In this document: positions 3,556-42,230 of the stretch, in pieces
How positions within the stretch are numbered: position 1 is the stretch's first letter
Layout of the letters: each line of letters begins with the position of its first letter
Assembly (NCBI GenBank): GCA_004431415.1
Contig: QPMI01000408.1
Location: 434,001 to 498,000 of the forward strand
Direction: 5' to 3'
Length of the DNA: 64,000 nucleotides
Origin: Cyanophora paradoxa CCMP329
Lineage: Eukaryota > Plantae > Glaucophyta
The notes under the pieces: model-generated
The model's database searches: none
What the model saw: the letters and a program-made list of their open reading frames with translations, nothing else
What the model was told of the DNA's origin: nothing
Program-made: the position numbers and the translations under genes

Positions 3556-3625
3556 CGTTATTAATAAGACGTTATTAATAACGTTATTAGTAACATTATA
3601 ATAATATATTATTAACATTATATAA
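3556..3625. repeat. AT-rich palindromic filler between the two LINE tails
   Basis: Repeated cgttatta(a/g)taa; perfect palindromes acgttattaataacgt (3569-3584) and ataatatattat (3601-3612). Confidence 0.75.
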
Positions 3626-19972: not shown

Positions 19973-20003
<31 letters not shown>

Positions 20004-23000
20004 CGATCGCGAGTCGCACCCGCGGCGCGGCGCCCCGCCGCTGCGCTGCCCGAGCGAGCGGCCCAAGCCCTGGGCCTTCAAAAGACCTTTGGATCCCCAG
20101 GGCACTCCCCCCACTGCGCATGCAGGCACTTCGCCGCCTCAATCACCGCCGCCGGAAGGCACTCCCCCCACTGCACATGCCCGAACCGGCGATCCGTCAG
20201 CCGAGACGCTTACGAGCACGTTGCGGGGCGGCGGGCGGGGCCGGACCTGGGCGGGGGGCAGCCGGCGAAGGTCTCCGCAGGTGAGGACGGGCGGGGAGCG
20301 CGCCGCGAGACGGGCCACGGCCACGCCCATGTCCTGGGCCGAGAGCCGTCGGCGGAGGGCGGGGCAGGGCGGGCGGGCGGGGCGGGGGCACCTCGCGGGT
20401 GACCGTGAGGCCGGCCTCGAAGGCGAGCGCCGCGAGGGCCTGCCGCACTGGCATCGCGTCCGGGAACACGAAGGCGGTCGGGTCCACCGGCGGGACGGAC
20501 GCGGCGCGGGCGCGGCCGGGCCGGGGCCGGGGCGGCGGCCGCGGGCGGCGGTGTCGCGGGAACGACGGCGGCGGGCGGCGGGGAGGGGCGGCAGGGGTTA
20601 CGGGCGCCGAGGGGGCGAGCAGCGGGGGCGCCTCAGGGGGGCCGCATGCGCCGTGGAGGGCATCGACGGGGGGGAGGGAATCGAAGCGGGGAGGGGGCGA
20701 GGGGCAAGGGGGCGAGCAAAAGCGCCCCCGGGGGCGGCAGCGGGCGCCGGAGCAGCCGGAGCCGCCGTTGCCGCCGCCGCCGCCGCCGGGCCGCCGGGGC
20801 CCCGGGCCGGCGAGGCCGGCGAGGTGGCAGGCGGGGACGCCAGCGGCAAAGGAACGCTGGGCCTTGCGAGGGGCGGAGGGGCCGAGACGGGGCCGGGGCG
20901 GCGCAGGGCGTTCCTCGCTGCGGGGAGGCCGTTCGGGGAGGGCGGCCGGGGCGGGAGAGACGGCGGCGGGGTACCAGGCGACAAAGCAGACGGGGGCCGG
21001 GGGGCGAGGAAGGGAGGGGGCAGGGGCTCCGCGGGCCTGATCCTGACCGCCTGGAGCGGGGCCGGGGCGGGGCCGGCCGAGGGCGGGCCGGAGGCGCCGG
21101 GGCGGGCTGGCGGCGCGTTGGGCGAGCGCCAGAGCAGAGAAAGAGGCCACGGCGGGGCGGCCGCGGACCGGAGCCGGGGCCGGGCCGGGGCCAGCGACGC
21201 GCCGGACGGCCCGGGCCCCGCGGCGATGGCGCCGGGCGCGGCTGCGCCGGGCGCGCCGGGCGCGCCGGGCGCCGCCCGCCGGCTTCGGAGGCAGGGGCGC
21301 CAGAGCCGCCGCAGGAGCCACTGCCGGAGCAGCCGCCGGAGCCGCGGCCCGAGCCAACGGAGACGCCGCTGGAGCCGCCGCTGGAGCTGCTGCCGGAGCC
21401 GGCGCCGGAGCCGGCGCCGGCGCCGCCGCCACCGCCGGAACAGCTGTCGGAGCCGCCAACAGAGTCGCGGCCGCAGGTGCCGCCGGGGTCAATACCTGAG
21501 CAGCCGCCGGAGATGCTGCCAGAGCAGCCACCGCAGTTGTCGACAGAGGCGCTGCTGAAGACGCCACCGGAGCTGCCGCCGGAGCCGCCGGAGCCGCCTT
21601 CGGATCTGCCTTCTTAGCTGCTTCCAAGTCCGCTGCCAGAGACACGACCGGAGACACGGCGGCCGAAGCCGTCGCCGGAACCGGCACCGGAGCTGCTGCT
21701 GAAGCCGCCCCCGAGGCCGCCACCAGACCCGTGGCGGCCGCTCTCGTTGAGGCCGCCGCTGAAGCGGCCGCCGGAGTCGCCACCACAGACGCCGACCGAG
21801 CAGCCGCCAGAGCCGCTGCCGGAGCAGCCGCTGGAGCCGCGGCCAGAGACGCCGCCGCAGCCGTCGCCGGATGCGCCACCGGGGCGGCCGCTGCCAGAGC
21901 CACGAGAGACACGACCGGAGGCGCTGCTGGAGGGGCGCTCGGCGGCTCCGTCGGACCCGCTGCTCTCCCAGCAGCAGCGTCGCTGGCTGCAGGCCCGGGC
22001 GGCGGGAGGACTGCCACGGGCCCTGGCTCGAGACGAGGGGCGCCAGCCGGAGTGGCGGCGGGCGGGGCGGGGGCCGCGGGGAGAGGCGCCGCCTGAGCAG
22101 CAGCGGCGGCCGCTGGGGACGACGGGCCGGCGGACGCGGCCGGTCCGGGTCCAAGGGGAGGGGCCAATGCTGCCGGCGCGGCGACCGGGACCGCGTGCGC
22201 ATGCCCCGGCAGAGCCACGGCGGGCGAAGCTCCGGCGCGCGCAGAGGCTGCGAGAGCGGAGGGCGCCGACGGGGCGGCCAAGGTACGTGCCGCCACGACA
22301 GAGGGGTCCGGTGGGGCTGCGGCGGGCGTGCCGGGGGCGGGGAGGGACGAGGCGGGGGAGGCTGGGTCCGCACGGGTCGGAGGAGGGGCAGCAGAGGGCG
22401 CCGGGCGCGCGGCGGCGGCAGGGGCCGATGCGGGGCTAGGGGACGGGGCGCGGGGGAAGTTCGGTGGAGCCGGCACGGCGATGGCCGCGGGGGGCGCGGC
22501 GGCGGGAACGGGAGCGGGGCGGCAGAGGCGGCCGACTCAGCGACCGGAACCAAGAGCCCGGGCGGGGCTGCGGCGGGGAGGGGGGGGAGGGGGCGCCCGC
22601 GGAGGCGGAGGGGGCGGCGGCCTCTGTAACGGCAGCGCCGAAGAGGACGCGGCGACCGGCGGCGACGGGAGGTGCGCGAGGGAGGTAGGGCGCGGGAAGG
22701 GCTCCAGACGCTCGCCCGGCGCCTCCGCTCCGGCGGCGGGGCCAGCGGAGGCTGCCGGGTCCGGCGTCCGCGGCGTGCTGGGGGCGCTCGAACCCCGCTC
22801 CGGGGCGGTGGCCGGCGGCGCGCTCGCGGGCGGGGCGGCCACGTGCAGGGGCCACCGCCCCAGCCAGATGGGCGGCTGCAGCGGCAGCGCGGTGGGGGCT
22901 GCCGGGACCGGCGCCCGCGGAGCGATCGGCACGGGCGACCTCGCCGGTATGCGCCCGCCGCCCACTGCGCCGACGTCGCCGCCCCGTCGGCGCCGCCGCG

Positions 23001-26000
23001 TCGGCGCCGGCCAGAGGCTGCTGCGCGGCTTGAGCGGGCGCCTGCGCCAGCTGCGCGAGGGCCGACTGGAGCACCCGCGTGGCAAGTGCGTCCGCGGCGC
23101 CCTGCGCGCGCCTCTGCGCCGGCTGCTGCACCGGCTGCGGCGGCTGCGGCAACGGCCGCTGCTGCTGCTGGTGGAAGTGCTGCAGAGCAGGGTGGGGCGC
23201 CCGAGTCGCCGAAGGCCGGGCCAGCAGCTGCTGCGCTTGCAGCACGTGGAGCGGCTGCGGCGGCTGCGGCGGCTGCGGCGGCTGCGGCGGCGGGTGCAGC
23301 AGCGCCTGTGCGTACTGCTGCAGCGCGTGCGCCTGTGCCTGCGCCGCCGCCGCCGCCACCCGCTGCGCCTCCCCGGGCTGCCACGCCTGCGCCGGGGCTG
23401 CGGCGGCGGGCTGCTGCTGCTGCCACTGGCGCTGGGCGGCGCGGTGCAGGAGCGTGGCGACTTGGCGCGGGCTCTCCCGTAGAGTGCTAAGCACGCCCAG
23501 GAGCTCGTAGAGGTGCTGCGCCAGCTGCTGCTCCGCCCGCGGGCGGCTGCGCCCCGCCGCGTCGAGTCCCCCCAGCTCTTGGAGCACCTCCCGCAGCTTG
23601 GCGTGCACCTGGGGCGCAGCGTGAGCGCAGGCGGGGCGGGGCGGGGCGGGGCGGGGCGGGGCGGGGCGCGCCTGCAGCAGCTGGATCTGAAGGTACGGCG
23701 CCATGAACTGTGGCGGCGGCGGATCGGAACGCATCGCATCGGCGGCGGCGGCGAGGGGCGCGGGGCAGGAGGGCGCGCACGAGCGGGTCGGCGGCGAAGA
23801 GGGTCCGGTCGACCGGGCCGAGGGCGAGCGCCAGGATGTTCTGGACGGCCCGAAGGCCCGCCGCGACCCGCGCCAGCAGGGACCGCCGCACCTGCCGCCC
23901 CGGCGCGTGGGCCGGCGCGAAGGCGGGAGCGGGGGCTGCGAGGAAGAAAAGCGTACCAAAGGGTCCGCATGCGTGCAGAACGCCTGCAGTGAAAGCGGTC
24001 AGAGGGGGCGGCGCTGGAGGAGGGGTACGGGCGAACCCGGAAGGCTTCGAGGAGGGGTACGTAGCACGCGGTGCCCCCCGTGGCGTGGAACGGGCCCGCG
24101 TCCAGCGAGCCGGGCTGCGGGGCGGCCTCAGGCGCGCAGGAAGAAAGGGGGGGGAGGGGAGGGGCCAAGGAGGGGTACGCGCCTCTGGGGGCTGGAGCAG
24201 GAGCTCTCGGGCGGGGTCCAGGTCGAACAGCGCGGCGGCGGGAGGGAAGGGGACGGGTATCGCGACGGGCGCGGGGGCCGGGGCCGGGGCCGGGGCCGGG
24301 GCCCGAGAGGATGAGGAGGCGTAGGCGGAGGAGGAGGAGGAGGAGGAGGAGGAGGCGGGCTGCGCCGCGGCCGCGGCCAGGCCGGCGGCGGGCTGCATGC
24401 CGGCCAACCGCTGCGGCCGAGAGGAAGTGGATGAGGAGGCCGCGGCGGCGGCGGCTGCGGCGGACGCGGCGACGGCCGCCGCGGCCGCCGCGGCCCTCTG
24501 CCGCTGCTCGGCGACCGCCGCGGCTCGCTGCCGCTGCTCGTGGACCGCCTGCAGCTCCGCGTGGCGCGCCTCCGCCGCCTCCTGCGCGCCCGCCCGCCCG
24601 CCCGCCCGCGTGAGCCGCTCTCCGCCGGCGCGGCGGCGCGGAATCGTGTACCCGGGTGTCGTAGAGGTTGCGGAGTAGAATGAGGAGGTCGTCGAGGCAG
24701 GGGTACAGCTGCAGGGCGCTGGGGCCGCCGGCGCCGGCCTCGAGCGCGGCGGCGACCTCGTCCAGATCGCGCAGCACGGCCAGCGGCGTGGTGGTGCGTA
24801 CCTCCAGTCCGCCCCGCTGGCCAGCGCGTGAGCGGGGAGGCGGCGGAGGGGGGGAAGGGCTAAGGGGCGTACCCGGCCGTCGACGAAGAAGAGGAGCGGG
24901 GCGGGCCCGAGGGGGGCGCAGGCGGCGGCGAGGAGCGCGGCGGCCTCGCGGAGGCTCGCGGCGGCGCGCGGGGCGAGGCCGGCGTCGGCGGCCCGCGGCC
25001 CGCCGGCCGCCAGCGCGTCCCGCACTGCTATGAGCTCTGCAAAGGGCGCGAGGATCGCCTGGAGCAGCCGGCGCTCGGGGGGCGCCGGCGCGCCGGCGGC
25101 GGCGGGCGGCGAGGCGCGCGGGGACCCGCGGGGGAGGCCCGAGGCCCCTCGCCGCGGATCCTGCCTGCGCGAGCGAAGAGGGCGCGGAGGCCTTGGCGGT
25201 GACGCGGGAGGAGCCGTCGGCGACGGCCCGCGGGCGCCAGCGCCGGCGACGGCCCGCGGGGCGCCAGCGGCGGCGCCGGGAGGGTGTCGGTGCAGGACGG
25301 CGCTCGCGGCGGCCTCGAGGGCGATAGCGCGGCGCAGCGCCGGCGGGGGCACCGCCAGCGCCGGGAACGAGAGCCCCGGCCCGTCCCGGCCCCTGGGGCG
25401 GCCGGCGGGGCGCCGGGGTCCGCGACGCGGCGGCGGGAGCGACGGCGGCTTCGGGTGCCGCCGGGGGCGCTGCTTCCGTCTCCGGCGCCGGCGCTGCAAG
25501 CGCCGGGGCCTGTGATGCGGTTATGGGAGCGTCGACGGCGGATTCCGCCGGCACCGTGGGCGCCTCTGGCGCCGGCGGCGCGAGCGGCGGAGCCCACGGC
25601 ACGGCGGGAGGCGCGGCGGCGGATTCCGGCGGCGCCGCAGTAGACGGAGCCACCGGGTCGGGCGCCGCGGCGACCACCGCCGTTGCCTCCAGCGCTGCGA
25701 GCGGCGAAGGCTGCAGAGGCCGCGCCACGGAGGGGAGTGCGACGGCGGCCCCGGCGCCGCCACCGGCGCCGCCACCGCAGACAGAGACAGAGACGCGGCC
25801 GGGGGAGCGGCGCGGCTGGCGGGAGCGGCGCGGCCGGCGATGCGGCGGCGGGAGCGACGGCGGCTTCGGGCGCCGCCGGGGGCGCTGCGTCCGTCTCCGG
25901 CGCCGGCGCCGCAAGCGCCGGGGCCCACGAAGCGGTTGGAGGAGCGACGACGGCGGATTCCGCCGGCACCGCAGGCGCCACCTCCGCCTCTGGCGCCGGC

Positions 26001-26522
26001 GACGCGAGCGGCGGAGCCCGCGGCACGACGGGAGGCGCGGCGGCGGATTCCGGCGGCGCCACCGCAGAGGGGGCCACCGGCGGCACAGGCTCCGGCTCGG
26101 GCGCCGCGGCGACCACCGCCGTTGCCTCCAGCGCTGCGAGCGGCGAAGGCTGCAGAGGCCGCGCCACGGAGGGGAGTGCGACGGCGGCCCCCGGCGCCGG
26201 CGCCGGCCCCGCTGCAGATAGAGCCAGCGGCGGCACTGGCCCCGGAAAGGGCGAGGCCGCCGCGGCCAGCGGCTCCAGCGCCGAGACGCCCTCGCCGCCC
26301 CCGTCTCCATCCCCGTCGTCGCCCTCGTCGTCGGTCACTGGGATGGAGGCCCCTGCGCGGGCGTCGGGCCGGCGGGAGGGCGAGCGGGCGGGCGGGCGGG
26401 GCGCACCGCCCGAGGAAAAGCTGGGCGCGGGGCTCCCGAGCGGCCGCCCATCCTGTGGCATCGCCGCCGGAGCCGGCGACTGCGACGCCGACGGCGGGGC
26501 CGAGGGCAGAGCCCCGTCCTCG

Positions 26523-26554
<32 letters not shown>

Positions 26555-29500
26555 AGCTTCTTCTGAAGACGCCGCCACCGGCAGCGCTGGTGCGAGCAGC
26601 TCCTCCGCCGGAGCAGCTGCCGCCTGCGACGCCGCCGGGACGGCCGCTGCCGCCGCCACCGTCGCCTCTGCCGCCGCCCGCAGAGCCGCTGCAGGGGCGA
26701 CAACACCTTCCGCAACCACGAGCTCAGTCATCCCCGCCGCCTCCGCCTCCGCCACCGCCTCCATGAGCGTTTCCAGTGCTGTCCGCCCAGCCGCTGCTGC
26801 CGGCGCCGCTGGTGCCTTCGGCGACGTCGCCGACCCCGACCCTGTCGCTGAGCCCGCCGCTTCCTCTGGCGCGGACGGCGCTGCCACTCTCGCCGCCCTT
26901 GCCGCCTCCACGATCATTTCCTTCGTAGCCGCCGCTTGGATCACCGCCGCCAGATTCGCCGTAGACGCCTCCGAACGTTCCCGCTTTGCGTCTCTCTCCG
27001 ATTGCGCCGCCACCGTCAACGCAATCGCCTTCGTCACCCACGACGCCTTCCGCACTGCAGGCGCCGCCGTCGCCTCCCGCGAGGCGGCGGACGGCGACGC
27101 CTCCCGTGCCGCGGCCACCGCCGCCGCCTCCCGTGCGGCGGGCGCCGGCGACGCCTCCCGTGCGGCCGGTTCCGGCGACGCCTTCCGCGTGGCCGGCGAC
27201 GCCTCCCGCGCGGCGGGCGCCGGCGACGCCTCCCGTGCGGCGGGCACCGCCGCCGCCTCCCGCGCGGCGGGCACCGCGCCGCCTCCCGTGCCGCGGGCAC
27301 CGCCGCCGCCTCCCGTGCCGCGGGCACCGCCGCCGCCTCCCGTGCGGCGGGCGCCACCGCCGCCTCCCGCGCGGCGGGCACCGCCGCCGCCTCCCGTGCC
27401 GCGGGCACCGCCGCCGCCTCCCGTGCCGCGGGCACCGCCGCCGCCTCCCGTGCGGCGGGCGCCACCGCCGCCTCCCGCGCGGCGGGCGCCGGCGACGCCT
27501 CTTGCGCGGCGGCGGCAGGCGACACCTCCCGCGCGGCGGGCGCCGCCGCAGACGCCTTGCGGGCGCGGCGGTCGGAGAGGCCTCCTGCGCAACCGGCGCC
27601 GCTGCAGCTCCCGCCCGGCGGGCGCCGCTGCATCCCGTGCGGCGGGCGCCGCCGCCGCCTCCCGCGCAGCGGCCGCCGCCATCGCCTCCTGCACGGCGGA
27701 CGCCGCCGCCGCCTCCCGCGCTGCGGGCGCTGCCGCTGCCTCCCGCGCAACGGGCGCCACCAACGACTTCGGCGTGGCGGGCGCCGCCGACGCCTCCCGT
27801 GCGGCATGCGCCACCGCCGCCTCCCGTGCCGCAGGCGCCGGCGACGCCACCCGCGCGGGCGCCGGCGACGCATCCCGAATGGCGGCCGCCGCCGACGCTC
27901 CTGCGCTGCGGACGCCACCGCAGCCTCCTGCGCGGCGGGCGCTGCCGCCGCCTCCCACGCAACAGGCGCTGCCGACGCCTCCCGCGCGCGGGCGCTGTTG
28001 CCGTCTGCCGCGCAATAGGCGCTGCCGCCGCCTCCCGCGCAACGGACGCCACCGACGCCTCCGCGCGGCGGCGGCCGGCGACGCCATCCGCGCGGCCGGC
28101 GCCGCTGCAGCCTCCCGCGCGGCGGGCGCCGCCGGCGCCGCAGCCTGGGACGGAGGCCTTTCCGACGAAGGCCTTCCGGCCGGGGGCACGGGCGCGGGCG
28201 CGGGCGGGGAAGCCGCTGGGCCCTCACACGCGTGCGCCGGGCGCTCGCCCCCTCCGCCGCCCTTCTCTCTCAGCTTGGCCGCCATCATCGCCGCAGGGCC
28301 GACGCCAGCCTTGGGCGTCCGGGGGGCGCCTCCGGCGGCCGGCCTCGGCGCACCCCCCGCGTCCCTCGCCGGGGGCCTGTCGGGGGCGTCACACGGGGAA
28401 GCGAAATGGGAGAGGGGGTACGAGCGCGGCGCACGGGACAAACAGGAGCGAGGGTGCGGAAGCGGACGACGCCGCTGGAGGGGCGGGGCCGCTGCGGGGC
28501 GGTGAGGGGGCGGCAGGGCCACGGGCGACCGGGCGCGCGCACGTGGATACGGTCGCATCGGAGGAGCCGGAGGAAAGCCGGCGGCGGGGCGCGACGCTGA
28601 AGCGCGGGAGGCATCAGCGGCGGACCTCACGGAAGGAATGTGGGGGAGGGCGCACGAAGAAGCGGCCTCGGGGGGCGGGTCCCCGGTGGGGCGCCGGATG
28701 CCCGAGCTGCCCCGCTTGAGGCGGGAGAGGGGTATGTCATCGTCGTCGTCGTCGTCGTCGCTGTCCCGGGCCGCCGGAGGAGGGGCGGGGGCGGGGGCGG
28801 GGGCGGGGCGGGGGCGGGGGCGGGGGCGGGGCGGGGGCGGAGGGGGTACGCGGGGCGAAGCAGAAGACGAGGAAGAGGAGGGACCGCGGGGCGAGGGGAG
28901 GGGGAGGGGCCCGGGCCGCGGCCCGGGGCGAGGCGGCGGCGGGGGCGGGGCGCCGCGGGGCGAGGGGGACGGGGAGGGCGCCGTGGGCGCGGATCGCTTC
29001 ACGAAGATGGCGGGGGCTGGCTCCGGTTCCGGGGCAAGGCGTGGGGCGAGGGGGCGAGGGAGGGCACGCCCGGGATCGTCACTGCGAGGCGCCCCGCCGG
29101 CGCGAGGCGTGGGCGGGCCCGGAGGCCGGCTGGCCGACTCCGCCGGCGGCCGCGCGGCCGGCGCGAGCGCGGGCGCGGGAGGGGTCGCTGGGTGGGCGGC
29201 ACGCGCTGGCGGGTCGGGAGGAGGCGGGAGCGGGCGGGGGCGCCGCGCTCGGGGCGGGCCCAGCAGGCCCTGCCGCCTTCTTCGGGGCGCGGGGGCCGGC
29301 GGGGCTACAGGGGGCGGCGCCGGCGGGTCGGCCCGCTGCAGACCCGGGGCCGGCGGGGCGCGAGGGGCGGACCGGCAGGTTCGCCGGCTGCGGTCTGGGG
29401 AGGCGAGGGGGCCGGGGCGGCGGGGGGGAAGAAGCGACGAGCCGGTCGCTGTCGTTGACGGCGAAGGGGTCGAATCCGGCGGAGGCCCCTTCCCCTTCCC

Positions 29501-31647
29501 CTCATCCCTCGGCCCGCCCCTCCGGCGGTCGGGCCGGAGCCGGGCCGGGGCAGGGGCCGGCTCCGCGGGGCGCTCCGGCGTGGGCGGGGCGGCGGGCCGC
29601 GGGGGGCTCGGCGTCAGCGCTCGCGCGGGGCTCGGGCTCCGCGGCGGGCGAGGCGGCGGCGGCGGCACCGCCGGAGGCGGCGCCGGCAAAGGCACGGCCG
29701 CCTCTGCCGATGCCTCCCGCTCTCCTCGCGCCGCGGCGGCCGCTGCCCTCGGCCTCCCTCGCCAGGCCGCCGCGCGGGCTGCCGGGCGCGGCGCCTCGCC
29801 GCGCCGCTCGCGCCCGCCCCGCCGGGGGCTCACGCTCCGGCTCCGGGCCCTCCTCTGCCGCCGCTCGGGGCTCCGGCTCCTGCTCCGACTGCGGCTGCGG
29901 CTGCGGCGCCGGTCCCGCCGGCCGCCCCGATCCTGGCTCCGGCTCCGGCTCCGGCTGCGGCTGCGGCTCCGGCTGCGGCTCCAGCTGCGGACCCTCCGTC
30001 GCTGCCTGCGCGGGCTGGGGCTCACGCTGCGACTCCGGCTGCGGCGCCTGCGCCCCGGGCTCCGGCTTCTGCTCCGGCTGCGGTCCCGGTTGCCGCCCCT
30101 GCTTCGCTTCGCGTCCCGCTCCCGCTCCCGATCCCGCTCCCACTCCCGCTCCCGATCCCGCTGCAGTGGCTCGGGCGACCGTTCGGCTGCCCGCCGCTTC
30201 CGCTCCGCAGACCCTGCGGGCTTCGTCAGAGGCCGGCCACCGCCGCGCGAGGGCGGACGCTGCAGCACCGATGGCGTTCGTGCTGCGCTCGGACTCCTCC
30301 CGCACCGCCGCCGCGGGGGCGTCTGCGCATGCCGTGCGTTCCACCACTTGGATGCGGGCCGTCACTTCCGCGGCACGGGCCGTCGCTTCGGCGCGAGCCG
30401 CGTCCCGGTACCCTCCCCAGCCCAGGGGCAGGGCAGCCCGAACCACGGCCGCGGCGGCGACGCGGGCGGAGACAGCCGCCGTGGGCGGCGAGGTCGCCGA
30501 TGAGAAAGGAGCCGCAGCCGCCAGCCGCGCCGCGGCGGGCGCGTCCGGCGCTGCGCGTCGGGCCGCTGCCGCGGGCGAGGCCGCCGCCGACGCCGGTGCC
30601 GCTGCGGCTGGGGGGATCGCTGTTGAAGGTGCAGCTGAAGGCCGGACCAGCGTTGCAGGCGAGGCCAGCACCGCGCCGGCGGGCGAGGCCGGTGGCTGCA
30701 CCCGGGTCAGAGCGGGGCGGGGCGGGGCGGGGCGGGGCGGGGCGGGCGGAAGCGCACGGGGCCGGACTTCGCGGGCTCCTCCAGAGACGTGAGGAGGTCC
30801 AGGAGGGCGGCGGCGCTCGAGTCTACTCCCGCCTGCTTTGCCTGCGGCCCGTCAGTCTCCGAGTCGGCGGAGGCGACGGCGGCGGAGGCGGCGCGGGGCG
30901 CGAGCGCACCGCGGGCGGCTGTTCGAGGGGGACGGGTCTGTACTGCGGGGGCGGGTCCTCGGGGAGAAAGATGCCGGCATTCCCGGAGGTCGTCCTCGCG
31001 AGGGGCCGCCTCGGATTCGAGAGCGAGAAGCGGACGGCGGGCTTGCTGGCGGGCGCTTCGCTCAAGGTCGGAGCGCTCGCGGGGGCAGCCGAGCTGCCCG
31101 CCGCGGGCGTCGGCGGCTCATGGATCGGCGGCGGGGGCGGCGGGATCGGCGCCGGCGGCTCCGCCGACGCGGCGGGTGCGGGGAACCGGAGTGGGGAAAT
31201 AGGCGCGCGCGCAGGCGCGGGCCGCGACAGCGGGGACACAGGAGCCACGGCGGGCCGCTCTGCGGCTCTGGCTGGAGCGGCTCTGGCAGTAGGCGCGGTG
31301 TGCGCGGTTTGGCCCTGCGGCGACGATGCTGCGGGCGGGGAGCCGGGCTGTGCGCCGCTGGCTCCAGACGCTGTGAGAAGGTTCGCCCCGCGCGCTTCTG
31401 CATCCTCGTGGCCCTGCAGCAGCCCTCAGCGTCAGGGGCGTCGAACCGCGGGAACCGCGGGAATAGTGGGTGGGCGGGGCGAGCGTGCCTGCAACAAGAA
31501 AGGAGGGGCGGGGAGAGGTTGTGGGTTCGGCAGCCGCACAGTACGCTCCTTGCGCGCCAAGCAGTCCTCCACGAAGAGCGGCAGCACCAGCCGAAGAGCG
31601 CTGAGCCGGTCCGGCGGCGCTGAGCCGCTTCCCAGAGACACTGACAT
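19891..31647 (-). CDS. Large multi-exon hypothetical low-complexity protein (Pro/Ala-rich, RS-repeat block, AREA repeats, Gln-rich segment); may be more than one gene
   Basis: Long minus-strand frames with GT/GC..AG-flanked globular-looking exons (DRLSALRLVLPLFVEDCL; LQLYPCLDDLLILLRNLYDTR; VHAKLREVLQEL..HLYELLGVLSTL; TAFVFPDAMPVRQALAAL). No recognisable domain. Boundaries uncertain. Confidence 0.45.
25431..26190. repeat. Internal tandem duplication, ~410-bp period
   Basis: ggcggcgggagcgacggcggcttcggg at 25431 and 25845; gttgcctccagcgctgcgagcggcgaaggctgcagaggccgcgccacggaggggagtgcgacgg near 25682 and 26121. Confidence 0.8.
27060..28140 (-). repeat. ~27-bp coding minisatellite (AREAAAVPA-type units)
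   Basis: Many gccgcctcccg(t/c)gcggcgggc(a/g)ccgcc units. Confidence 0.8.
29850..30160 (-). repeat. RS/RD/RE dipeptide repeat block
   Basis: ctccgg/ctgcgg and tcccgc hexamer runs that translate as RSRSRS and RDRERE on the minus strand. Confidence 0.7.
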
Positions 31648-32107
31648 GCTTATAGTGCCTCCGCGAGCGATTGGAGGGTGTCGAGGCGAGCGGCGGCGAG
31701 TCCAGAATCTACCAACCGCGAACAAGAGTACGCTCTCGCCGGTGTACGGGCCAGCGAGGAAGCGCTCAAACCACAAGAGCTCATCGTGGAGCTTCTTCCG
31801 CACGCAGGGGCGACGTGGCGGAACTAGCGCCTATTGGTTGTTTTGACCGCTTGGCATTCGCGCTGAGTTGATCGCTCACCGGTGCTCTACAGCGCATTCT
31901 GCAACGCTAGCGCTCTGGGGCCCTGCTGGCGCTGACTGGCCTTGTGCCCGCGACCCACCCCCGGCTGGGCGCTCTGGGAGTTGAACCAGAGCCTTCATCA
32001 TCGTTTGGGGGGTACATTTGTGCCGCAGTGCGCGTGTTCAGTTGCAATGGATGCCCCGGTGCTTCGGTGCCTCTAGCTTGGCATCGGCAGCTGCAGAAAA
32101 GCCTGCA

Positions 32108-35100
32108 ATGACGGCGTCGCCGCAGCCGCAGCCGGCGCCGCAGCTGAACAGTAATGTCTACGTGTCGGCGACGCTGCTGGAGAACGGCGATGTGGATGCT
32201 GGCTTCGTGCTCGCGAGAGTGCGGGCGATTTCGCCGAACGGAGCGTTTCTCACCGTCGCGCTTCCGAACGGCGCGGACGCAAGCGTGCGCCGGTCTGAGG
32301 TTTATGAGCCCAATCCTCCAATTGCCGGCGGAGTGCCCGATATGACGCAGGTAGGCACACCCGATATGCCGCGCCTGCATGCGCGCGCACCGCTGACCGC
32401 TGACCGCTGCATGCATATGCGCTTGCAGCTGACTCATCTAAACGCCGCCGCTCTTCTTCAGAACGCGCGATGCCGATACGAAACTGATCTCATCTACAGT
32501 TCGTCGCCGCTCGCAATCCCAGGGCCGCCAGGCCTGCGACCTCGCGCCGGGCCTGAGCCTTCCGCATGCGCAGCTTACACGGCCTACATCGTGCTGGCGC
32601 TCAATCCGTACAGGCAAGTTGCGAACGCAAGCGCCTCGCCGGGATGGGCCGTTCGCCCGCTAATACGCCAGCAGGCCGCTCCCCATCTATGGTCGGGACG
32701 AGATGGACAGGTCAGCCCGCCGCCCCCTCCCCCCCCCCTTCTTCCCCCCCATCTTTCCCCCTCCCCCCCCCCCCCCTCCTCCTCCTCCTCCCCTCCCCCC
32801 CCCCCCCTCCCCCCCCCCGCCCCCTCCTCCTCCCCCCCTCCCCCCCCCCCCCCCCCCCCCCCCCCTCCGCGAACGTTAACGACGGCGGGGCAGGTACCGC
32901 GGGCGGCCGATGGGTGCCCCGGAGCTCCAGCCGCACGTGTACGCCCTGGCGGACCGCGCTTTTCGTTCGATGAAGGCCGAGAAGCAGAGCCAGAGCATCC
33001 TCATCAGGTGCCGCAGTGCCGCAGTGCGGGCTTCGCCGCCGCTCTGGTAGCCCATGAGACGCGTGCAGCGGCGACTCCGGAGCGGGAAAGACTGAGACCA
33101 GCAAGGTGAGCCAATCGGCCTAGCGGGTGCATCTCTGCTAACTCGCGTTTCCTTCTTCGCAGATTGTGATGCAGTACCTGGCATACGTGGGCAGGGCACC
33201 CGGGGAGACGGAGGAGCTAGGGAACAGGGTCCTGGAAAGGTAATGCACCCCTAGCCGCCTCCGATTTGCCGCGCACCGACCGTCGCCCCCGCAGCAACCC
33301 CGTGCTGGAGGCGTTCGGCAACGCGAAGACGCTCCGCAACAACAACTCCTCCCGCTTCGTGCGCCGTCGCCGGCTTCAGAGTAGCGATGCGAGGCTCCGG
33401 AGGTCCGAACCGGGGAACCGCAGGGCAAGTTCATGAAGATCTTTTTCAGCGCCGAAGGCCTCATCATCGGCGCCGGCATCGACACATGTGAGCCGCCCGA
33501 CCCGGGCGCCGTGCAGGCGCTGCCGCGCTCCGCCCCCGCTCACGGAGGGTACGTCAGACCTTTTGGAGCGCTCGCGCGTGACGCAGCACGACCACGGAGA
33601 GCGCAACTACCACGTCTTCTACCAGGCGCGTCGCCCCTACCGCCTCTACCCCCCGCCCACCCGGCCCCTCCCCCCGCCTGATTTTTACCCCACCCCCCCA
33701 CCCCTCCCCTCTTTCCTCGCCTCCCAATACTACAGCTCTGCGCCGGCGCGAGCGACGCGGAGCGCCGTGCGTGCTTCTCCTGCTATTAGACCCCACGCCG
33801 CCGACCGAGGCCGCGCAGAGCGCTACCGCATCGGCCGGGCGGACGAGTTCAAGATCCTGAGCCAGGTATCTTTCGTCCCGGCAAGCCCGTGCGGTCCTTT
33901 CCTCTCTTCGCAACCCAAAGCCAGTCCTCCCGGCAGGGCGGCTCGACAAAGGTCAAGAGGGTCGACGACGCGGCCGACTTTCATCGCATGCGGGTGCGGC
34001 CGTACCCCCCGCACGAATTTGTACCCCCGTCACGCGCCGCCCAGGAAGCAATGGCGCGTGTGGGGATCGGGGAGGACGACCAAGCGAACGTCTTTCGGTC
34101 TGCCGTACCCTCGTCGCTCGCAGCCTCGCGGCATCGCGGCTTTGGCCGACCGCTCGCGCAGTGTCCTGGCTGCAATTCTCCACTTGGGGAACCTGCGCTT
34201 CGTGACGGCGCCGGGCAGCGGGGGCGAGGCCTCTGTTGTCGAGAGCAAGGGGGCCGACGGGGGCCACCTGCTCGCGGCCGCGGATCTGCTCAAAGTGGAC
34301 CCCGCGGACCTCGAGCAGGCCCTCTGCCACAAGACCATCTGCCCGAGGAGTCCCTCCCGCGACGCCGACGCCGTCAAGCGGAACCTCAAGCCTGCCGAGG
34401 TCCCCCTGAGCGTCTCCCGCACGCGCCTCGCCGCAGCGCCCCCTCACGCGCACTTAGGCGGAGGCGAGCCGGAACGCGCTGGCGCGAGCGATCTACCAGC
34501 GCCTCTTCGACTGGCTCGTCGCTCGCATCAACTCCAGGCAAGGCCCCTTGAAACTTCTCTCTCTCGAGCCAGCGCCCAGACCCGTGCAGCTCACTGCGCG
34601 CCCCGCCCCGCAGCCTCGAAGTGGAGCAACCCTCGCACGAAGACTCGCAGCGGTCGTTTGCTGCGGAGCCGCCCCCAAGCACTTTCATTGGCGTTCTTGA
34701 CATCTTCGGGTTTGAGTCGTTCGAGGTGCGCACGTCTTTCGAACGACTCGAACAAAGGGGCCTCCCTATATATATGGCTAATTGTGTGCGTGTGCAGCGG
34801 AATTCTCTCGAGCAGCTGTGCATCAATTACGCGAACGAGCGCCTACAGCAGCACTTCATTGCCCAGGTGCCCTGTGCGCTGGGAAGAGGGCAGTACACCC
34901 CTCCTAACCCCCCTTCAGGTTTTCAAGCAGGAGGCGGACATCTACGCGCGCGAGGGCATCGCGGTGCGCGGCGGCCCGGGCCGCCTCCGCTGCAGCTTCA
35001 GCTCTAAGCTTCGATCCTCTCGTGCGGCCCACAGGTGCAGCAAGCCGGGTACGCCGACAACGCTGAGACCATCCGCCTCATCGACAAGGTGTGTCCTCCG

Positions 35101-38100
35101 CCCCGGCCCCTGACACGACTAGTGCTCACGACTTTCAACTGGCAGCGGCCCGGGGGCGTCTTCGCGCTGCTGGACGAGGAGTGCCGCCTCCCCGGCGGCT
35201 CCGACCGCGCCCTCGCCGGCAAGATCCACGCCAACCTCGCCTCGTCCGCCCCCGTTGCCTCTCTCCCGCTTCCTTTTGACGAACCTTCTGACTGTGGGCA
35301 GGCACCCTCGGCTGCTGGCGCCGCCCACCAAAGCCCGGCGCGCCCCTTCTCGCACAAAGGACGAGGCATTCATCGTACGCCACTACGCCGCCGACGTGCG
35401 AAGCGCATCCCCTCCCGCCGTCGCCTCGATTCCCGCCGTGGAGTCATGATCATGATTCCCGTCGATTCCCGATTCCTCGTCGTTCTCAGGTGACGTACGA
35501 TGTGGCGGGCTTCATGGAGAAGAACAGCGACGCGCTGCACGTCGACCTGCTTGCCCTCGCTGCCTCCTCCAAGTGTCCCCTCATGCACGCCCTCTTCCCT
35601 CCACCGGCGCCTGCCCCGGGGGCCCGCGCCGAGCATTCGCCCCCCCACTCCATCTGGTCCAGTTTCTCCACCGCCATCGTGGCGCTGCTGCGCTCAATGT
35701 TCCTCGTAACTTCTCCCCGCCCCCACCCATGTCTGACACGCGTACGTTCATCGTCTGACACGGGGACCCCTTCAAGGGCCAGTCGCCCTCCTTGTCCCGC
35801 GTCCCCAGCGTCTGCAGCAAGTTCAAGGTCGGCTGCACGTTAAACTTGCCACTCTCTCCACCGAATTCGAAGCTCGCGTGCACGCGCAGTCCCAGATGGA
35901 CAACCTCATGAAGGACATCGGACTCACTTCAAGCCACTTCATCCGATGCATCAAGGTCTCTTTTCGGACCCTGCCCGACACGCGCCCCGCGCTCGTCTTT
36001 CGTCTCGAAACCGAACGCGAGCCGCCGCAGCCGAACGACGAGCAGGCGCGGCGCCGTTTCCACGGACGTTCGGTCCTCAACCAGCTCCGCGCCAGCGGCA
36101 TGCTTGAAGCCATCCCATTACTCCATGCTGGGCGCGCCCCCTCGTCTTTGCCGCCATCCCGTGCACCCCTCACTCGCCTATACAGCTACCCTACTCGCTG
36201 CACTTTCGAAGCGCTCTATCAGCGGTGCCTGCAGCCCCGGCCCTGACGACCCCACTCCCTGTCTCGGCGCTGACTCGACGCAAGCTACAAGTCGAGCGCG
36301 CCAGAGGCGCTCCGGAAGCTGAAGCCGGCGCGCTTTGCGGAAGTTCTCCTCGTCGCCCTCGGCGTGCCCCGCTCCGACTTCAAGGTTCGAATTCCAGCCG
36401 CGCCGCTTGCTTGGCGATTCAAGCCGCGCACGGGGGCTTACAGCGCGGCAGGTGGGCCTCACGTGCGTCTTCTTCCGCTCGGGCAAGCTCGGCGTCGTCG
36501 AAGAGCTCACCCAGGGCGCCATCGGGTGCGCTCGCGCTCGGGTGCGCTGGGTGTCCCTCCCTCACAGTGGCGCCGGCATGCGCAGGCATCTCGCCGAGGG
36601 TGTAGCTGAGCATCTCATGGGGCTCGCCCGCAAGCGCTGGACAGGGGCCCTCTGGGCCGTCCGGGGCGCTCTCCGATGTACGGCACACGCGCGCGCGCTC
36701 TCTCTCCCGAACTGCACCTAATCATCGACGCCGCCGCAGTCCGACGAGTCGCCCGGCGTGCGCGGGCACTTGCGCGGCTCATCGCATTTGTCCGCGTAGT
36801 GCGGGCAGCTATGCGCGCCTTCCTCCGGCCCTTACGCCGCCTCCGCCTCCGCCGCATCCACATCAGCGCGGCCGCTCTCCTGATCCAGTCAGGTGCGCCA
36901 GCGCCGCACCAGCTTGCGCTGGGCCGCACACCGCATTTGTCCCACTCCGGTGCAGCGTGGCGGACGCATGCAGCAGTGCTGCAGCGGCGCCAGGCATTGG
37001 CGGCGGCACGACTACTGCAGGCGACGTGGCGAAGCCTTGCGGCGCAGCAGTGCCTGACAGAGCGGCGCGCAGAAGCAGCCCTTGCCGCGAGCAGCTTCAC
37101 AGTAATCAACGCCACGGCTGCCGTTGCTGCCGGCGGCCTCATTGACGACTGCAGCGTCACAATCATTGACGGCCTCGCCCCAGCAGCAGCTGCCGATCGC
37201 GACCTTACCCCGGCGACGGCTGCCGTTCCCAGCTCGGCCGCCGCCGCCGACCCCACTCTGTCCACCGCCAAATGCCCTGCCCCGGCCGCCGCCGAAAGCC
37301 CCACTCCTGCTGCCTCCATTGATCCCATCCCGCGGCCGGCTGCTGCTGATCATGACGATCCCACTTCGGCCGCCGCCGAACACTCCTCCCCTGCTACCTA
37401 CGTTGATCCCATCCCGCGCCCGGCTGGAAATGCTGAGGAGGCGGCCGTACCCCCGATCCTTTCTTTCGTACCCCATCGCGTATCCTCGACTGAGCAGGTT
37501 CGGGGCGTTTATACTTTCTTTCAATACGGCACAGATCCGACGCGCTTCTGCAGGCACAGCGGCAAGATTTAGATGGGGAGAAGCGGCCGCGAAGGAGCTC
37601 TGGGCCGGGGTCTGTCACTTCAAGCCTTCGTCAATGGCCTTCTTTGACAGGGTAAGGGATATCTAGGGCTTGCGACGCTTCATGAGGTATATTGATTTCA
37701 ATTCCGCCATCAGCGCTGAAGGGAAGGGCTGGGTCGACGAGGAAAGGAAGCTGGACCTGAGGAACTCGGGGCTGAATGAGTGGCCGACAGCGGAGATCGA
37801 GTCCGTGGGTTCCGGGCTTATAGAAGAGCTGGATCTGCGCGGCAACGAGCTCACAAGAATCCCCGGGGAGGAGATCGCAATGCTGACTTGCCTACAATCG
37901 TTGTGGTTGAGCAGAAACTCGCTGTCGTCCATACCGCCGGAGATCGAGCAGCTCGCGGGCCTCTGCGTGCTCTGGATCAGCAGCAATAACCTGACAACGC
38001 TGCCAGCTGAGATACGGCGGCTTACAAACTTGCATAAGCTTGTGGTGGACAAGAACCGGCTTGTAGCATTGCCACCCGAGATCGACCAGCTGACAGGTTT

Positions 38101-39601
38101 GCAACACCTCGACATCAGCGGCAACCAGCTCGAGGTCCTGCCGTCAGAAATCGGACAGTTGACGAGTTTGAAGACATTACTGTTGAGCCACAACAAACTA
38201 GTCGAGCTTCCAGCGGAAATTGGGTGCCTTGCGAGCCTGCGTATTCTTCGCGTCAACAACAACAAGCTGGAGACGCTGCCGCCGTCCATGGCACGGTTCT
38301 ATGATCGCCCAGACTTCCAGCTCGAGATAGAACACAACCCTCTCAATGGCCTGCCTGAGCACGCTCGGCTTTCTGGCATGGCAGCTCTCATGTATCTTCG
38401 CTCCTTGCCTTCCTCCTCCGACCGTGTGAGTTGTAAATGCTGTTGCGCTCGCGATTGCTTTTCTATGTACGTCTGACCTGACCAATCTGTTTCCCCTGCA
38501 GAGGCGCCAGACTTCGAACCGAAAGCGAACGCCCGCAACCCCGCTCACTGGCCATAATGGTTAGCACATCTGCTGTTATTCAACATTGGACACGCTACCT
38601 CCTGATCACTCTTTGCAAATTGTTCTCGCAGATTTAGACGAGCAGGATCAAATCGTTGTTGCCGGCCCATCCACTCCACCCACGGCCCCTATGCGCCACC
38701 CATCTCCGAGTCCGGGTCGGCCTGACAAGAAGTGGGACTGCTTCATAAGGCGCGCCTCCAGGATCTCTCGCCTTCAACCCCGCCCCCCCCCCCCCCCCCC
38801 TCCCCCCCCTCCTCTTTAGCTTACTACCCCGGCGCCCTCATGCCTCGCGATTGGGCAGCTATTCGCACGAGGACACGGAAATCGTCAGCAAGTACTGTGA
38901 AGTCCTACGCGCAGCCAATATTTTGATATGGTTTGCCGAATCGCGCTTGCTGTGCATGCTCGCCGGGTTCCCCAGACCGGGTACCGCGGCCGGCAAGCTG
39001 AAGTGAACCGTTGAACGTTTTTCGCAGGATGGATTGCACATCCATAAAGTCCGGCCAGAGATGGCTGGACCGAATTGCGGTGCATTTGTTTTAGTTGGAG
39101 CGTTTTTAGTCGTATTGCTCGCCTGATCATGAGCGTTTTGTAAATTACCCAGGAAGCCATGCAGTGCTGCCGGTCCTTCATCTGCTTCCTCTCACTTCCG
39201 TACCTCAAATCTGAGAACTGTGACGACGAGATGCATTACGCGCACAAGTTGCGCCTTCGAATGTTCCCTGGTCAGCGACCGCAGTCCATCTCGCGATCTC
39301 GCGAATATACCTACATGCTCACTGTACATGTTGCCGCCGCAGTGTGGCTTGCAGACCACAAAAGCAATGCCGCGGCCGTGAGGCGAGTTCTGCCACCAGC
39401 CTACGATGCACGTTTGCTTGGAATTCGTTCTGCATGCGCACTCTGTCGTGCTGCTAAACTGTGACGCGGTCGCAGTTCATGTTGAATAAGACGCACTGGA
39501 CGGAGCAGCACGGCAGAGGACCCGCTGCCATTCGCGCGGCAGCGAACTATCTCGTCGAAGGCATTCAAGACTTTCTCGACGATCTGTCCATACGTAGCTG
39601 A
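32108..39601 (+). CDS. Myosin (class VI-like motor) - IQ - LRR - TIR fusion protein, ~40 introns
   Basis: Spliced motor motifs: [16 protein letters not shown]-loop GDSGAGKT (33070-33093), [76 protein letters not shown] motifs IQSAWR and LQATWR. LRR exon about 37714-38424. TIR: [40 protein letters not shown]. Every junction from motor to TIR is phase-compatible. An alternative in-frame ATG lies at 32051. Confidence 0.85.
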
Positions 39602-39656
39602 TATCGATTGCAGTTGCAATTGGCCATATGCATCGGGCCATTGCAAAGAATTGCCA

Positions 39657-39876
39657 TTGAGCTCTTCTAGATCTACTACTTCTCCTTGCGCTCGTTCTCC
39701 ATATCCATTGCGTTCATACGATCGTGTCCCTTCTCGTGACCCCTCTTGATTATGTGTCTTGCGATTGTCTGTCTTGCTATTGTCTGCTATCTTTTGATTT
39801 ATGATTCTTTCAATTTGTTATTCTTTAGTATTACTTTTTACGCGGGGTTCGCCCCACCGTAGTCTCTCAGAAAAAA
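39657..39876 (+). mobile_element. Diverged 5'-truncated LINE fragment (ORF end, 3' UTR, hairpin, poly-A)
   Basis: gatcgtgtcccttctcgtgacccctcttga matches 3515-3544; ends ggggttcgccccaccgtagtctctcagaaaaaa. Confidence 0.85.
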
Positions 39877-40659
39877 TGCTTGGCCACTAGTACTACTTAG
39901 AGCAGCATATATTGCAACCGATAAGACTAATTCAATGACGAGTCTCGATCCGGAGTGCCGGATATCGATCGGAGACTCGGAGTACCTCTGATCTAGATCT
40001 GCTGCGTACGCGTGCTCGCGCTGGCCATGTGCATCATCTTATAGTTTTAATGCATGGGCCGAGCCGGGGCTCCTGCAGCTGGGTCGACGCGTACGTACGC
40101 GTCCTACGGTACGTGGACATTGACGCTGGCCATGGATTGCGACCGTCGGATCGGACGTCGACCATATGCATCGATATCACCGAGTCATGATTTGACTCAG
40201 TGATGCCACATACAAGAGGATCAAATTAAAGCGAACCCGACTTAAAAGCTTCGGACGCCGCGACGGAACCCGGCCCGGGATCCGGAGCCTCGGAGCCCCG
40301 CGGCGGGGTACCGTAGATCTACTATAGCTAGGCTAGCGCTAGGACGTTAACGTTAACCCAGCTCGAGATCCGGATCAGATCGATATCGATATCGATTTTC
40401 AAAGACTTTAAAGTTGCTCGAGCTCTCTCCCCGGGCCCGCGGCCGGTAGAGCCGGTTGAGTACCCCTCTCCCCCTAATGCGCATGCGTGTTTCGAATTCA
40501 AAGTTTGTATTTGATTTCCAGGCTTGAATGCATATGTATCCGTGCTTCATTGTAATTTCAAACGCGGGAGTGAAGCTTAACAACTTGGCAAGTCGGTACG
40601 CAGCGGTACGGGCGGGGGCCGCGGCGGTACGGCGGCCGCGGGCGGGGGCCGCGGCGGCC

Positions 40660-42230
40660 CTACGCAACGGCGAAGGCGCCGGCGGCGAGGGCGGCGGGGA
40701 GGGCGGGCCCGAGGGGGCGCGGCCGCCCGCTCCTGCTGCTGCAGCTGCTGCGGCGGCGGCGCGGGGCGAGGGCGGGGCCGGGGCGCGCCCGGCGGCGGCG
40801 CGGGCGGCGGCGGCGTGGGTCCAGACGGGCGGCCACGCGTCCTCCTCCTCGCTGTCGTCGCTGTCCGACCAGTCGCGCCGCGGGCCCGCCGCGGCCGGCG
40901 CGATGCCGAAGCCGCCCGGCGCGGCGGGGGCGGGACCGGCGGCGGGCCCGGCGGCGGGGGCGGGGGCCGGGCTCCACTCCGCTAAAGAGTCGGCCTGGGC
41001 GCCGCAGCGCTCGAGCAGAGCGGCGAAGCACTTGCCGGCGCCCGTCACGCTCTGCTGCTCCAGGCTCGCCTCCAGCGCGTGCGACAGCTCCGCCACGCTC
41101 TGTACCCCCCTGAGCGGGGCCCGGGTACCCGTTTCGATGACGGGCGGCGGACCTTCTCGAGGTCGCAGATGAGCGTCGCGAGCTCGCGCTTCGTGGGGCT
41201 CGCCGTGCAGTGGAAGAACGCCACGTACCCGCACTTGAGCACGTGCCAGCTCTGGGGCGCGCGGTTCAGGGGGGTACGGAGGCGGAGGGGGGGTACGGGC
41301 GGGCGCGCCTGGAGGACGGTTGCGGTGGCGCGGCCGAGGATGGCGCCGCGGCGGTGGGAGGGTCGGCGGGGCGGCGGCGCGCGGCGTCGGGGTCGGCGGC
41401 GGGGCAGGAGCGGGCGCCGCAGCCGCAGGCGCGGGCGACCTCCTGCGCCTCCGCGTCCGACATGTCGACGGCCCGCAGCCGCTGCAGCAGCGAGCGCTCC
41501 CGCCTCAGGTTGTTCGAGTGGAAGAGGTACCTCCTGTACATGTGCACTGCGGGCCCGGCCCCCCGGATCGATCGCGAGCGAGCGGGGGGCGCGGGGCGCG
41601 GGGCGCGGGGCGGCGCGCACGGTAGTGGGCCATCGCGCTGGTGCGCCCCGTCGCCGTCTCGCGCTTGCAGAGGTGCAAGACCTTCTGGTCGTAGCACCTG
41701 CCCGGGGGGCTCAGCGGGCGGCGGCGGCGGCACCATCGGCTGCGGCGGCGGCGGCTGCTGCGGCGGCGACGCGCACCAGAGGTCTCCACACGCCCAACAG
41801 AACTCCGTTAGGCAACCACTACAGGTCAGGTGGTTGTAGCCGGGGGCTGCGGGGCGCGGGGCGCGGGGCGCGGTCAGCGCCGATCGCCGGGGAAGGGCGG
41901 GCCCTGGCGCCCGCGCGAGCTTCGGGGAGCGGATGGCGCTGGTCACTGGGAGAGCGCGCTCTGGCCGGACGAGGGGAGGGGCGCGCCGCTATCGAGACGG
42001 GCGGGGCCGGGAAGAGGCGCGGCCTTTTGGAATGCTCGCGCGGCGTGACAAGCGCGGGTCTCCCTTCAGCTAGGAAGCTCGCAGCTAATATGCAGAACAA
42101 CTCCGACCACTCCCAGGTGAGAGGGAACCCCCGGCGGCGGATCGGCCGCGAAGGTTCTCCAGGCGGGGCGCGGGGGAAGCACGCACTGTGCGGCTTGCTG
42201 GGCGCGACGTTGCATGCCGGGCAAGGCACC
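40660..42230 (-). CDS. Degenerate Ariadne-family RBR E3 ligase (RING2 remnant + Ariadne domain); possible pseudogene
   Basis: YNHLTCSGCLTEFCWAC resembles RING2. AHYLHMYRRYLFHSNNLRRE, ATVLQSWHVLKCGYVAFFH and DLEKSVAELSHALE resemble ARIH Ariadne-domain helices. No clear RING1. Boundaries uncertain. Confidence 0.6.

Follow-up and report, generated by a model that had tools for sequence, protein, structure and literature searches.

The gene described here lies on the forward strand of a 64,000 nt window of the glaucophyte Cyanophora paradoxa CCMP329 (GenBank contig QPMI01000408.1, positions 434,001–498,000), and all positions are given in the numbering of that window. Three-frame translation of 31000–41000 showed myosin motifs spread over a succession of small exons, a 712-nt exon encoding leucine-rich repeats (LRR) and six small exons encoding a TIR domain. 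The 4,644-nt coding sequence (CDS), with exon borders set by coordinates, begins at the ATG at 32108, ends at a single TGA stop at 39599–39601 and contains no internal stops. Of the introns, which range from 51 to 183 nt, 34 are GT-AG and six GC-AG; one GC donor, supported by spliced contigs, closes the penultimate exon after 39407. Long poly-C tracts are present in the introns at 32711–32893 and 38750–38858. The features of the gene are listed in Table 1.

Table 1. Features of the fusion gene, with positions in the 64,000 nt window
Feature	Position	Strand	Basis
Whole coding span, 41 exons, 1,547 aa (C. paradoxa tig00020553_g10595.t1)	32108..39601	+	Spliced contigs
Exon 1, N-terminal SH3-like beta subdomain of myosin head	32108..32350	+	Beta strands in model; aligns with paralogue N-termini
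Myosin motor domain, aa 77-797, exons 1-29, myosin-VI-like, no insert 1	32336..36478	+	Pfam; PDB; tree; alignment
P-loop GDSGAGKT (E to D, common to paralogue g14119)	33070..33093	+	Alignment
Switch I, NNNSSRF(G)	33338..33358	+	Motif
Switch II, DIFGFE	34699..34716	+	Motif
Insert-2-like segment, aa 810-844, W831/W836/F844 in 1-6-14 spacing; W787 equivalent Gly825	36515..36741	+	Gap-free alignment to myosin VI
Two degenerate IQ-like motifs (from aa 892 and aa 915), across intron 31	36883..37047	+	Motif; no Pfam IQ match
Ala/Pro/Ser-rich linker, aa 930-1108, seam of motor part and LRR-TIR cassette	37060..37651	+	Composition; contig joints
Exon 34, LRR array: family N-cap GKGW..E.KLDL, 7 canonical 23-aa repeats, C-cap	37714..38425	+	Pfam; N-cap identity
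TIR domain (TIR_2 type), aa 1398-1546, exons 36-41	38730..39595	+	Pfam; AlphaFold pLDDT 91; Foldseek
Asn1467, replacing WxxxE tryptophan	39216..39218	+	Alignment
Glu1471, catalytic-position glutamate (NCDDE)	39228..39230	+	Alignment
3' transcribed region	39602..39800	+	Contigs extend beyond 39800

One spliced gene encodes the fusion

The spliced model is identical, residue for residue, to a public protein (P0001; EukProt EP00741 tig00020553_g10595.t1) that was returned by a search with TIR exon 39 alone, and the gene model is therefore already in the public annotation, where it has a bare identifier only. The single myosin-IQ-LRR-TIR reading frame proposed in an earlier reading of the locus (the sequence-only reading) is thus that of an independently annotated protein, and the four exon joints claimed there are all present in the sequence and all in frame. 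Homology searches were run with the spliced model exon by exon, and whole-protein analyses were performed on the public protein. Single exons matched the Pfam families Myosin_head, LRR_8 (E 1e-29) and TIR_2 (E 9e-4 over 39 aa). In the full protein, the Myosin_head profile was matched over its full length (2-679 of 679) at aa 77-797 (E 4.7e-220), LRR_8 scored 74 bits and TIR_2 at aa 1402-1489 scored 64 bits against a curated cut-off of 28; the IQ family, also expected from the sequence-only reading, was not matched. Exons 28 and 30 searched singly against PDB gave no match, and an exact look-up for contigs encoding the fusion protein found none.

Transcript data were available as assembled contigs, not reads, and the RNA nature of the runs is a guess. 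Six presumed-RNA runs contained 0.37–0.56 of the words of 35900–39700, as expected of spliced RNA. Three RNA-type runs from three studies and one DNA run were mapped on 34000–39800, with the poly-C run at 38771–38818 outside the comparison. Both joints that connect the motor to the LRR exon (37497/37554 and 37651/37714) were found in contigs of all three RNA-type runs, with at least 101 nt on each side. The joints 38425/38502 and 38559/38632 and all of the TIR joints were likewise found in spliced contigs of these runs, and the spliced joints were absent from the contigs of the DNA run. In run X15, the pieces of one 3,716-nt contig extended from 35490 in the motor to past 39800, beyond the TIR stop, and the 523 nt that it contained between 35706 and 36739 correspond to the sum of exons 24-30. 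Both X15 and X17 included a contig in which the motor exons continued through to the 3' end with the two seam introns removed. Transcripts ending at the TAA near 37653, the outcome that the sequence-only reading had set against a fusion, were not found among the contigs listed; this TAA sits in the donor of intron 33 and is spliced out. Misassembly at the fusion point was also considered, and is ruled out because a single DNA contig spans 35141–38770 without a break. Motor, LRR and TIR are joined in one real spliced gene.

The spliced contig of run X19 starts at 37198 with nothing upstream, and run X20 had the same word share, which could reflect either 3' bias or an internal start. In a spliced RNA starting at 37198, the first in-frame ATG would be that of Met1164. 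Intron 33 (37652–37713) also includes an ATG that shares the reading frame of the LRR exon; it was removed in every contig seen, and an unspliced or internally started RNA using it could encode a stand-alone LRR-TIR protein.

The motor is myosin-VI-like

The P-loop, switch I, switch II, relay, SH1-SH2 and converter are all present in the motor, and deviations, each of them conservative, affect only 3 of 112 conserved columns (1–5 in other myosins). The motor was modelled with a predicted local distance difference test score (pLDDT) of 83. When aa 680-862 were compared with PDB, the best solved relatives were all myosin VI (107–120 bits), while other classes scored 77 bits or less, and Foldseek with the motor model also ranked myosin VI first. 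The alignment to myosin VI is gap-free through the converter and insert 2, with approximately 9 of 39 residues identical in insert 2. In myosins of classes V, VIII and XI, an IQ motif follows the converter at +24/25; in the fusion motor and in class VI, helix breakers occupy +16 to +24 and residues +36/37 are RW, after which come the three hydrophobic residues in 1-6-14 spacing. This spacing was described for the insert-2 calmodulin site (PMC4914028), and insert 2 is the element that reverses myosin direction (10.1101/078626). Exon 15 alone had pointed weakly to myosin IE, an assignment that the full motor does not support.

The closest motors are those of the paralogues g14119 (69% identity) and g12171 (48%), then those of Diphylleia and Rigifila, then choanoflagellate class VI. 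In a quick tree built from 42 motor sequences, with support from the Shimodaira-Hasegawa-like approximate likelihood ratio test (SH-aLRT) and no bootstrap, the three Cyanophora myosins grouped together (99). They fell within a clade of class VI and CRuMs sequences (98) and outside class VI proper (100), and the branch length was 0.18 for the fusion motor versus 0.13 for its sister. VI-like myosins with RUN tails were reported in Emiliania and Thecamonas (PMC3942036). A second survey listed the Cyanophora myosins as orphans, disputed a deep class VI and kept the haptophyte VI-like myosins out of class 6 (PMC5583752). As the two surveys disagree on the extent of class VI, the motor is, by its sequence relationships, best called myosin-VI-like, and it has not been filed in class VI.

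At least three myosin-VI-like genes are present in Cyanophora. The motors of Diphylleia and Rigifila (CRuMs) are similar and likewise have a long neck and an insert-2-like segment, so that the range of VI-like myosins is wider than the set of lineages given in PMC3942036 (P0014, P0015, P0016-P0019 and P0133 for the Cyanophora and CRuMs proteins together).

A VI-like motor with an insert-2-like segment could move toward the minus ends of actin filaments, and for the fusion motor we consider the case for and against such movement about evenly balanced. Insert 1, near the nucleotide pocket, is absent in the alignment, as it is in the choanoflagellate class VI sequences, and the equivalent of MYO6 W787 is a Gly; both points, together with a straight, low-confidence AlphaFold helix through insert 2, argue against reversal. 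The annotated isoform t2 differs by a 4-residue insertion, which arises from an alternative acceptor in intron 12 (33865–33937) and falls at the place of insert 1 in metazoan myosin VI.

Neck, linker and LRR array

The two IQ motifs of the sequence-only reading are present, but in a degenerate form (IQxxWR, without the G and the last R) that misses the Pfam IQ model; the equivalent neck of the sister g14119 scores weakly on it. Similarity to g14119 carries on through the neck and then fades, and Glu, Arg and Lys make up 12% of the linker compared with 60% at the same place in g14119. The linker contains an internal duplication (37283–37342 and 37367–37426, 85%). No Pfam match to a single alpha-helix (SAH) or to the MYO6 cargo-binding tail was found, and the charge of the tail is low. 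Since no coiled coil or other dimerising element was evident in the tail, one molecule on its own is unlikely to walk processively.

The LRR array had been estimated at about 8–9 repeats; the array is there, and its exact count is 7 canonical repeats plus 2 capping repeats. Its N-cap is 50–58% identical to those of two proteins (P0006 and P0174), namely g1888 and, with three cassettes, g15428. The LRR-TIR cassette starts three codons into exon 34, and the start Met of the family is missing from the spliced form. Between LRR and TIR, aa 1340-1397 form a Pro/Ser/Arg-rich linker in which no signal peptide or membrane helix was evident. The Pfam scan of the full protein detected no NB-ARC, NACHT or other NTPase besides the myosin.

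The TIR domain

Foldseek placed the modelled domain in the five-stranded TIR fold, and the GAG codon that had been read as encoding the catalytic glutamate is that of Glu1471, which aligns with E208 of AbTir and with the Glu of Cat1 in helix C. The motifs NCDDE and SY-S/A-H are retained around it. Among 151 significant Foldseek matches the active AbTir assembly 7uxu came first, and all matches listed were TIRs. By sequence, the closest solved TIRs include the assembly-activated NADases Cat1 (E 1e-8) and AbTir, and the adaptor TIRs of MyD88, MAL and Toll-like receptors (TLR) are also among the sequence and fold matches. The likeness to SARM1 and plant TNL TIRs drawn earlier holds for the fold and for the catalytic-position Glu, but the domain is of the bacterial TIR_2 type and belongs to a Cyanophora-specific clade. 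A SARM1-type TIR was rejected, as the ranking by sequence is led by Cat1, PdTIR and AbTir and the ranking by shape by bacterial TIR_2 clusters, the neighbours in the ESM Atlas. A query of the ESM Atlas by features gave no usable match, and with the TIR as query the metagenomes scanned yielded no relative.

In AbTir the E208A mutant is inactive and activity requires assembly (10.1101/2022.05.07.491051). Several protists have TIRs with NADase activity (10.64898/2026.04.20.719644), and virus-resistant Gephyrocapsa shows induction of TIR and LRR genes (PMC12489294).

Origin of the two halves

The tail of the fusion protein (aa 1111-1540) aligns at 40% identity with the whole of g1888, a stand-alone LRR-TIR protein of 403 aa, from its second residue. 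The closest TIR sequences are those of other Cyanophora genes with several architectures. In the tree of TIRs, the Cyanophora sequences formed a clade (SH-aLRT 97) among bacterial TIRs, in which the fusion TIR was on an ordinary branch. The first TIR of two tandem-TIR paralogues has lost the Glu that the fusion TIR retains. The N-cap/LRR cassette and the TIR recur in many other combinations within the genome, and the nearest LRR-TIR relatives seen are 40–58% identical, though clustering at 50% identity may hide closer ones. Of the motor paralogues, g14119 (P0014) has a charged tail and g12171 (P0015) ends in a C-terminal RUN domain. Both halves of the gene thus come from Cyanophora gene families, and the tail is a whole copy of a Cyanophora-specific LRR-TIR gene carried on a duplicated myosin. 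The Cyanophora TIR_2 family with NCDDE (P0002-P0008) includes TIR-only, SAM-TIR, LRR-TIR and TIR-TIR-beta-helix forms.

Search for the same architecture elsewhere

Protein searches were of the shared-word type, with the best 120 matches listed. A search with the TIR region among proteins of 850–2,700 aa returned the fusion protein as the sole match. None of the 119 other matches listed for the LRR region had PF00063, and LRR or TIR families were found in none of the 119 other matches listed for the motor region. Among all 283 fetched proteins, the combination of a motor with LRR or with TIR was confined to the fusion gene. These searches are not exhaustive, as a myosin with an unrelated TIR could escape shared-word matching among the best 120. 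Literature searches on myosin and TIR and on Cyanophora and TIR yielded no relevant paper and no fusion, and neither TIR nor LRR is mentioned in the text or supplements of two myosin surveys, their figures being outside this scope. The statement of the sequence-only reading that no described myosin-LRR-TIR architecture is known therefore stands for the databases and literature searched, where no second myosin-LRR or myosin-TIR protein was found. The architecture appears to be new, and both constituent parts are of known kinds.

Surrounding genes

No further myosin, LRR or TIR pieces were found in the window. Downstream, a convergent gene (41266–41946, reverse strand) has a match to an IBR half-RING and is a candidate RBR-type E3 ligase, although the match is below the Pfam cut-off on the open reading frame (ORF). 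Upstream, a divergent gene (20000–31650, reverse strand) of 80% GC has long Arg/Ser-rich and Ala/Pro-rich frames and no Pfam match, and its likely start is about 450 nt from the myosin ATG. The region 1–5400 is lower in GC (approximately 51–56%) and has a strong AT skew and ORFs of 813, 418, 233 and 259 aa with no Pfam match; it is possibly a foreign or mobile element.

Comparison with known systems

Class VI myosin (MYO6) is the best PDB match of the motor by sequence (120 versus at most 77 bits over aa 680-862) and by fold, and shares with it the gap-free converter and insert 2, the hydrophobic spacing and a clade in the quick tree (SH-aLRT 98). The fusion differs in having no insert 1, a Gly for W787 and a longer neck. 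Where class VI and the RUN-tailed VI-like myosins of Emiliania and Thecamonas have an SAH, three-helix bundle, MYO6 cargo-binding domain or RUN domain, it has LRR-TIR. The paralogues g14119 and g12171 share its insert-2-like segment and IQ neck, and the CRuMs myosins of Diphylleia and Rigifila are 42–45% identical in the motor, but the tails of these proteins are Glu/Arg/Lys-rich or end in RUN and none contains LRR or TIR. The stand-alone Cyanophora LRR-TIR and TIR_2 proteins (g1888, g12663, g9058, g23880, g22320, g8207 and g15004) share the TIR clade and NCDDE, and g1888 the N-cap; this family has no motor and is uncharacterised. The TIRs of AbTir, Cat1, SARM1 and plant TNLs share the fold and the helix C Glu. 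Unlike them, the fusion has Asn for the WxxxE Trp and has no SAM, NB-ARC, coiled-coil or CARF oligomeriser. In Toll-like receptors and bacterial LRR-Roc-COR-TIR proteins the LRR also precedes the TIR, but in the fusion neither a signal peptide nor a membrane helix is evident between the two, a Roc-COR GTPase is lacking, and a myosin ATPase is found at the N-terminal side instead.

Possible function

The motorised sensor/effector role suggested by the sequence-only reading is hypothetical. TIR enzymes are activated by proximity, and the known means are SAM rings, NLR resistosomes, coiled coils and ligand-bound filaments. The scheme that we favour is that a duplicated Cyanophora myosin-VI-like gene lost its charged tail and acquired an entire LRR-TIR gene from the expanded TIR family, spliced on in frame via a low-complexity linker, though the order of these events could have been different. 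The intact motor motifs and the lack of a coiled coil suggest that the product would be a monomeric actin-binding ATPase, which would place an LRR-TIR switch on actin filaments, possibly toward their minus ends. Binding of a ligand or cargo by the LRR would then cluster several molecules on one cargo or filament, where the TIRs, by analogy with AbTir, Cat1 and SARM1, may assemble and cleave NAD+ to nicotinamide and linear ADP-ribose (ADPR). If the TIR is active, loss of NAD+ with linear ADPR as the product is likely. A cyclic messenger is unlikely, as Asn1467 is found where all tested cyclase TIRs have an aromatic residue (10.1101/2022.05.07.491051). By analogy with the active protist TIRs and the induced Gephyrocapsa genes, cell-autonomous defence or a stress response would be the likeliest setting. 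As a whole, this scheme of an actin-placed, cluster-switched NADase in defence or stress is held tentatively, at somewhat less than an even chance. The more specific version, in which a minus-end VI-like motor carries its own pattern-recognition LRR and NAD+-cleaving TIR, and clustering on actin or on captured cargo such as an invading particle switches on NAD+ depletion, is doubtful.

Several observations weigh against the enzymatic, actin-placed scheme. The fusion is known from one gene in one species, with no orthologue found. AlphaFold, given a mixed-class alignment and no calmodulin, predicted a straight helix through insert 2 (pLDDT 56–78). The WxxxE Trp is Asn throughout the Cyanophora TIR family; replacing this Trp by Ala lowered activity in AbTir (W204A) and abolished it in the plant L6 and ROQ1 TIRs, and non-aromatic residues at the position are commoner in TIRs that make only ADPR or are inactive (10.1101/2022.05.07.491051). 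The missing active-site Trp would also suit a non-enzymatic cargo adaptor, in which TIR-TIR and LRR contacts of the tail would let the myosin transport or tether further TIR proteins of Cyanophora or a partner bound to the LRR. Cargo binding is the usual role of a myosin tail, the paralogue g12171 has RUN at its end and other relatives have RUN or cargo-binding tails, the genome offers many related TIRs as possible partners, and adaptor TIRs are among the matches. However, Glu1471, NCDDE and SY-S/A-H were retained while other copies in the family lost the Glu. Adaptor and enzyme roles are also not mutually exclusive, and we consider a purely adaptor tail to be on the unlikely side, though the most probable of the alternatives to the scheme that we favour.

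Because LRR-TIR and TIR modules have been widely shuffled in this genome, the gene could also be a lineage-specific fusion of little adaptive weight. A spare myosin upstream of a wandering LRR-TIR gene would have been joined to it by read-through splicing, with the halves not yet coupled. The single species, the use of the same cassette and TIR in LRR-TIR, SAM-TIR, TIR-TIR-beta-helix and TIR-only genes, the recent duplication within the low-complexity seam, and an insert 2 and IQ motifs somewhat more worn than in g14119 are all in keeping with this. Such a nearly neutral origin is less easily reconciled with 1,547 codons in 41 exons free of stops and frameshifts, intact motor, LRR and TIR motifs, the lack of long branches, the loss of the family start Met from the spliced form, and the 40–58% identity of the nearest LRR-TIR relatives seen (subject to the clustering limit given above); we regard it as rather unlikely. 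A further alternative is that the locus makes two products, a tail-less myosin, with a stop at 37570–37572 if intron 32 is retained, and an LRR-TIR mRNA that starts internally; the long form would then be minor or a contig artefact. The X19 contig, which begins only at 37198, the word share of X20 and the ATG within intron 33 would fit this, and a contig across two genes does not prove a single transcript. The contigs of X15 and X17 nevertheless join motor exons to the 3' end across both spliced seam joints, and no intron-retaining contig was among those seen. X19 itself has lost intron 33 with its ATG and has no in-frame start before Met1164, and 3' bias explains it equally well. Two separate products are therefore improbable.

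The evidence comes from a single gene of a single species, and the parts that form its two halves are already known. If the actin-placed NADase scheme is correct, a TIR would be positioned or clustered in a new manner, by a myosin motor in cis, and NAD+ signalling would be tied to actin in a single-celled alga. The fusion protein also allows a direct test of whether VI-like motors outside Holozoa run backwards, and the direction of such motors is relevant to the dispute over how old class VI is (PMC3942036, PMC5583752).

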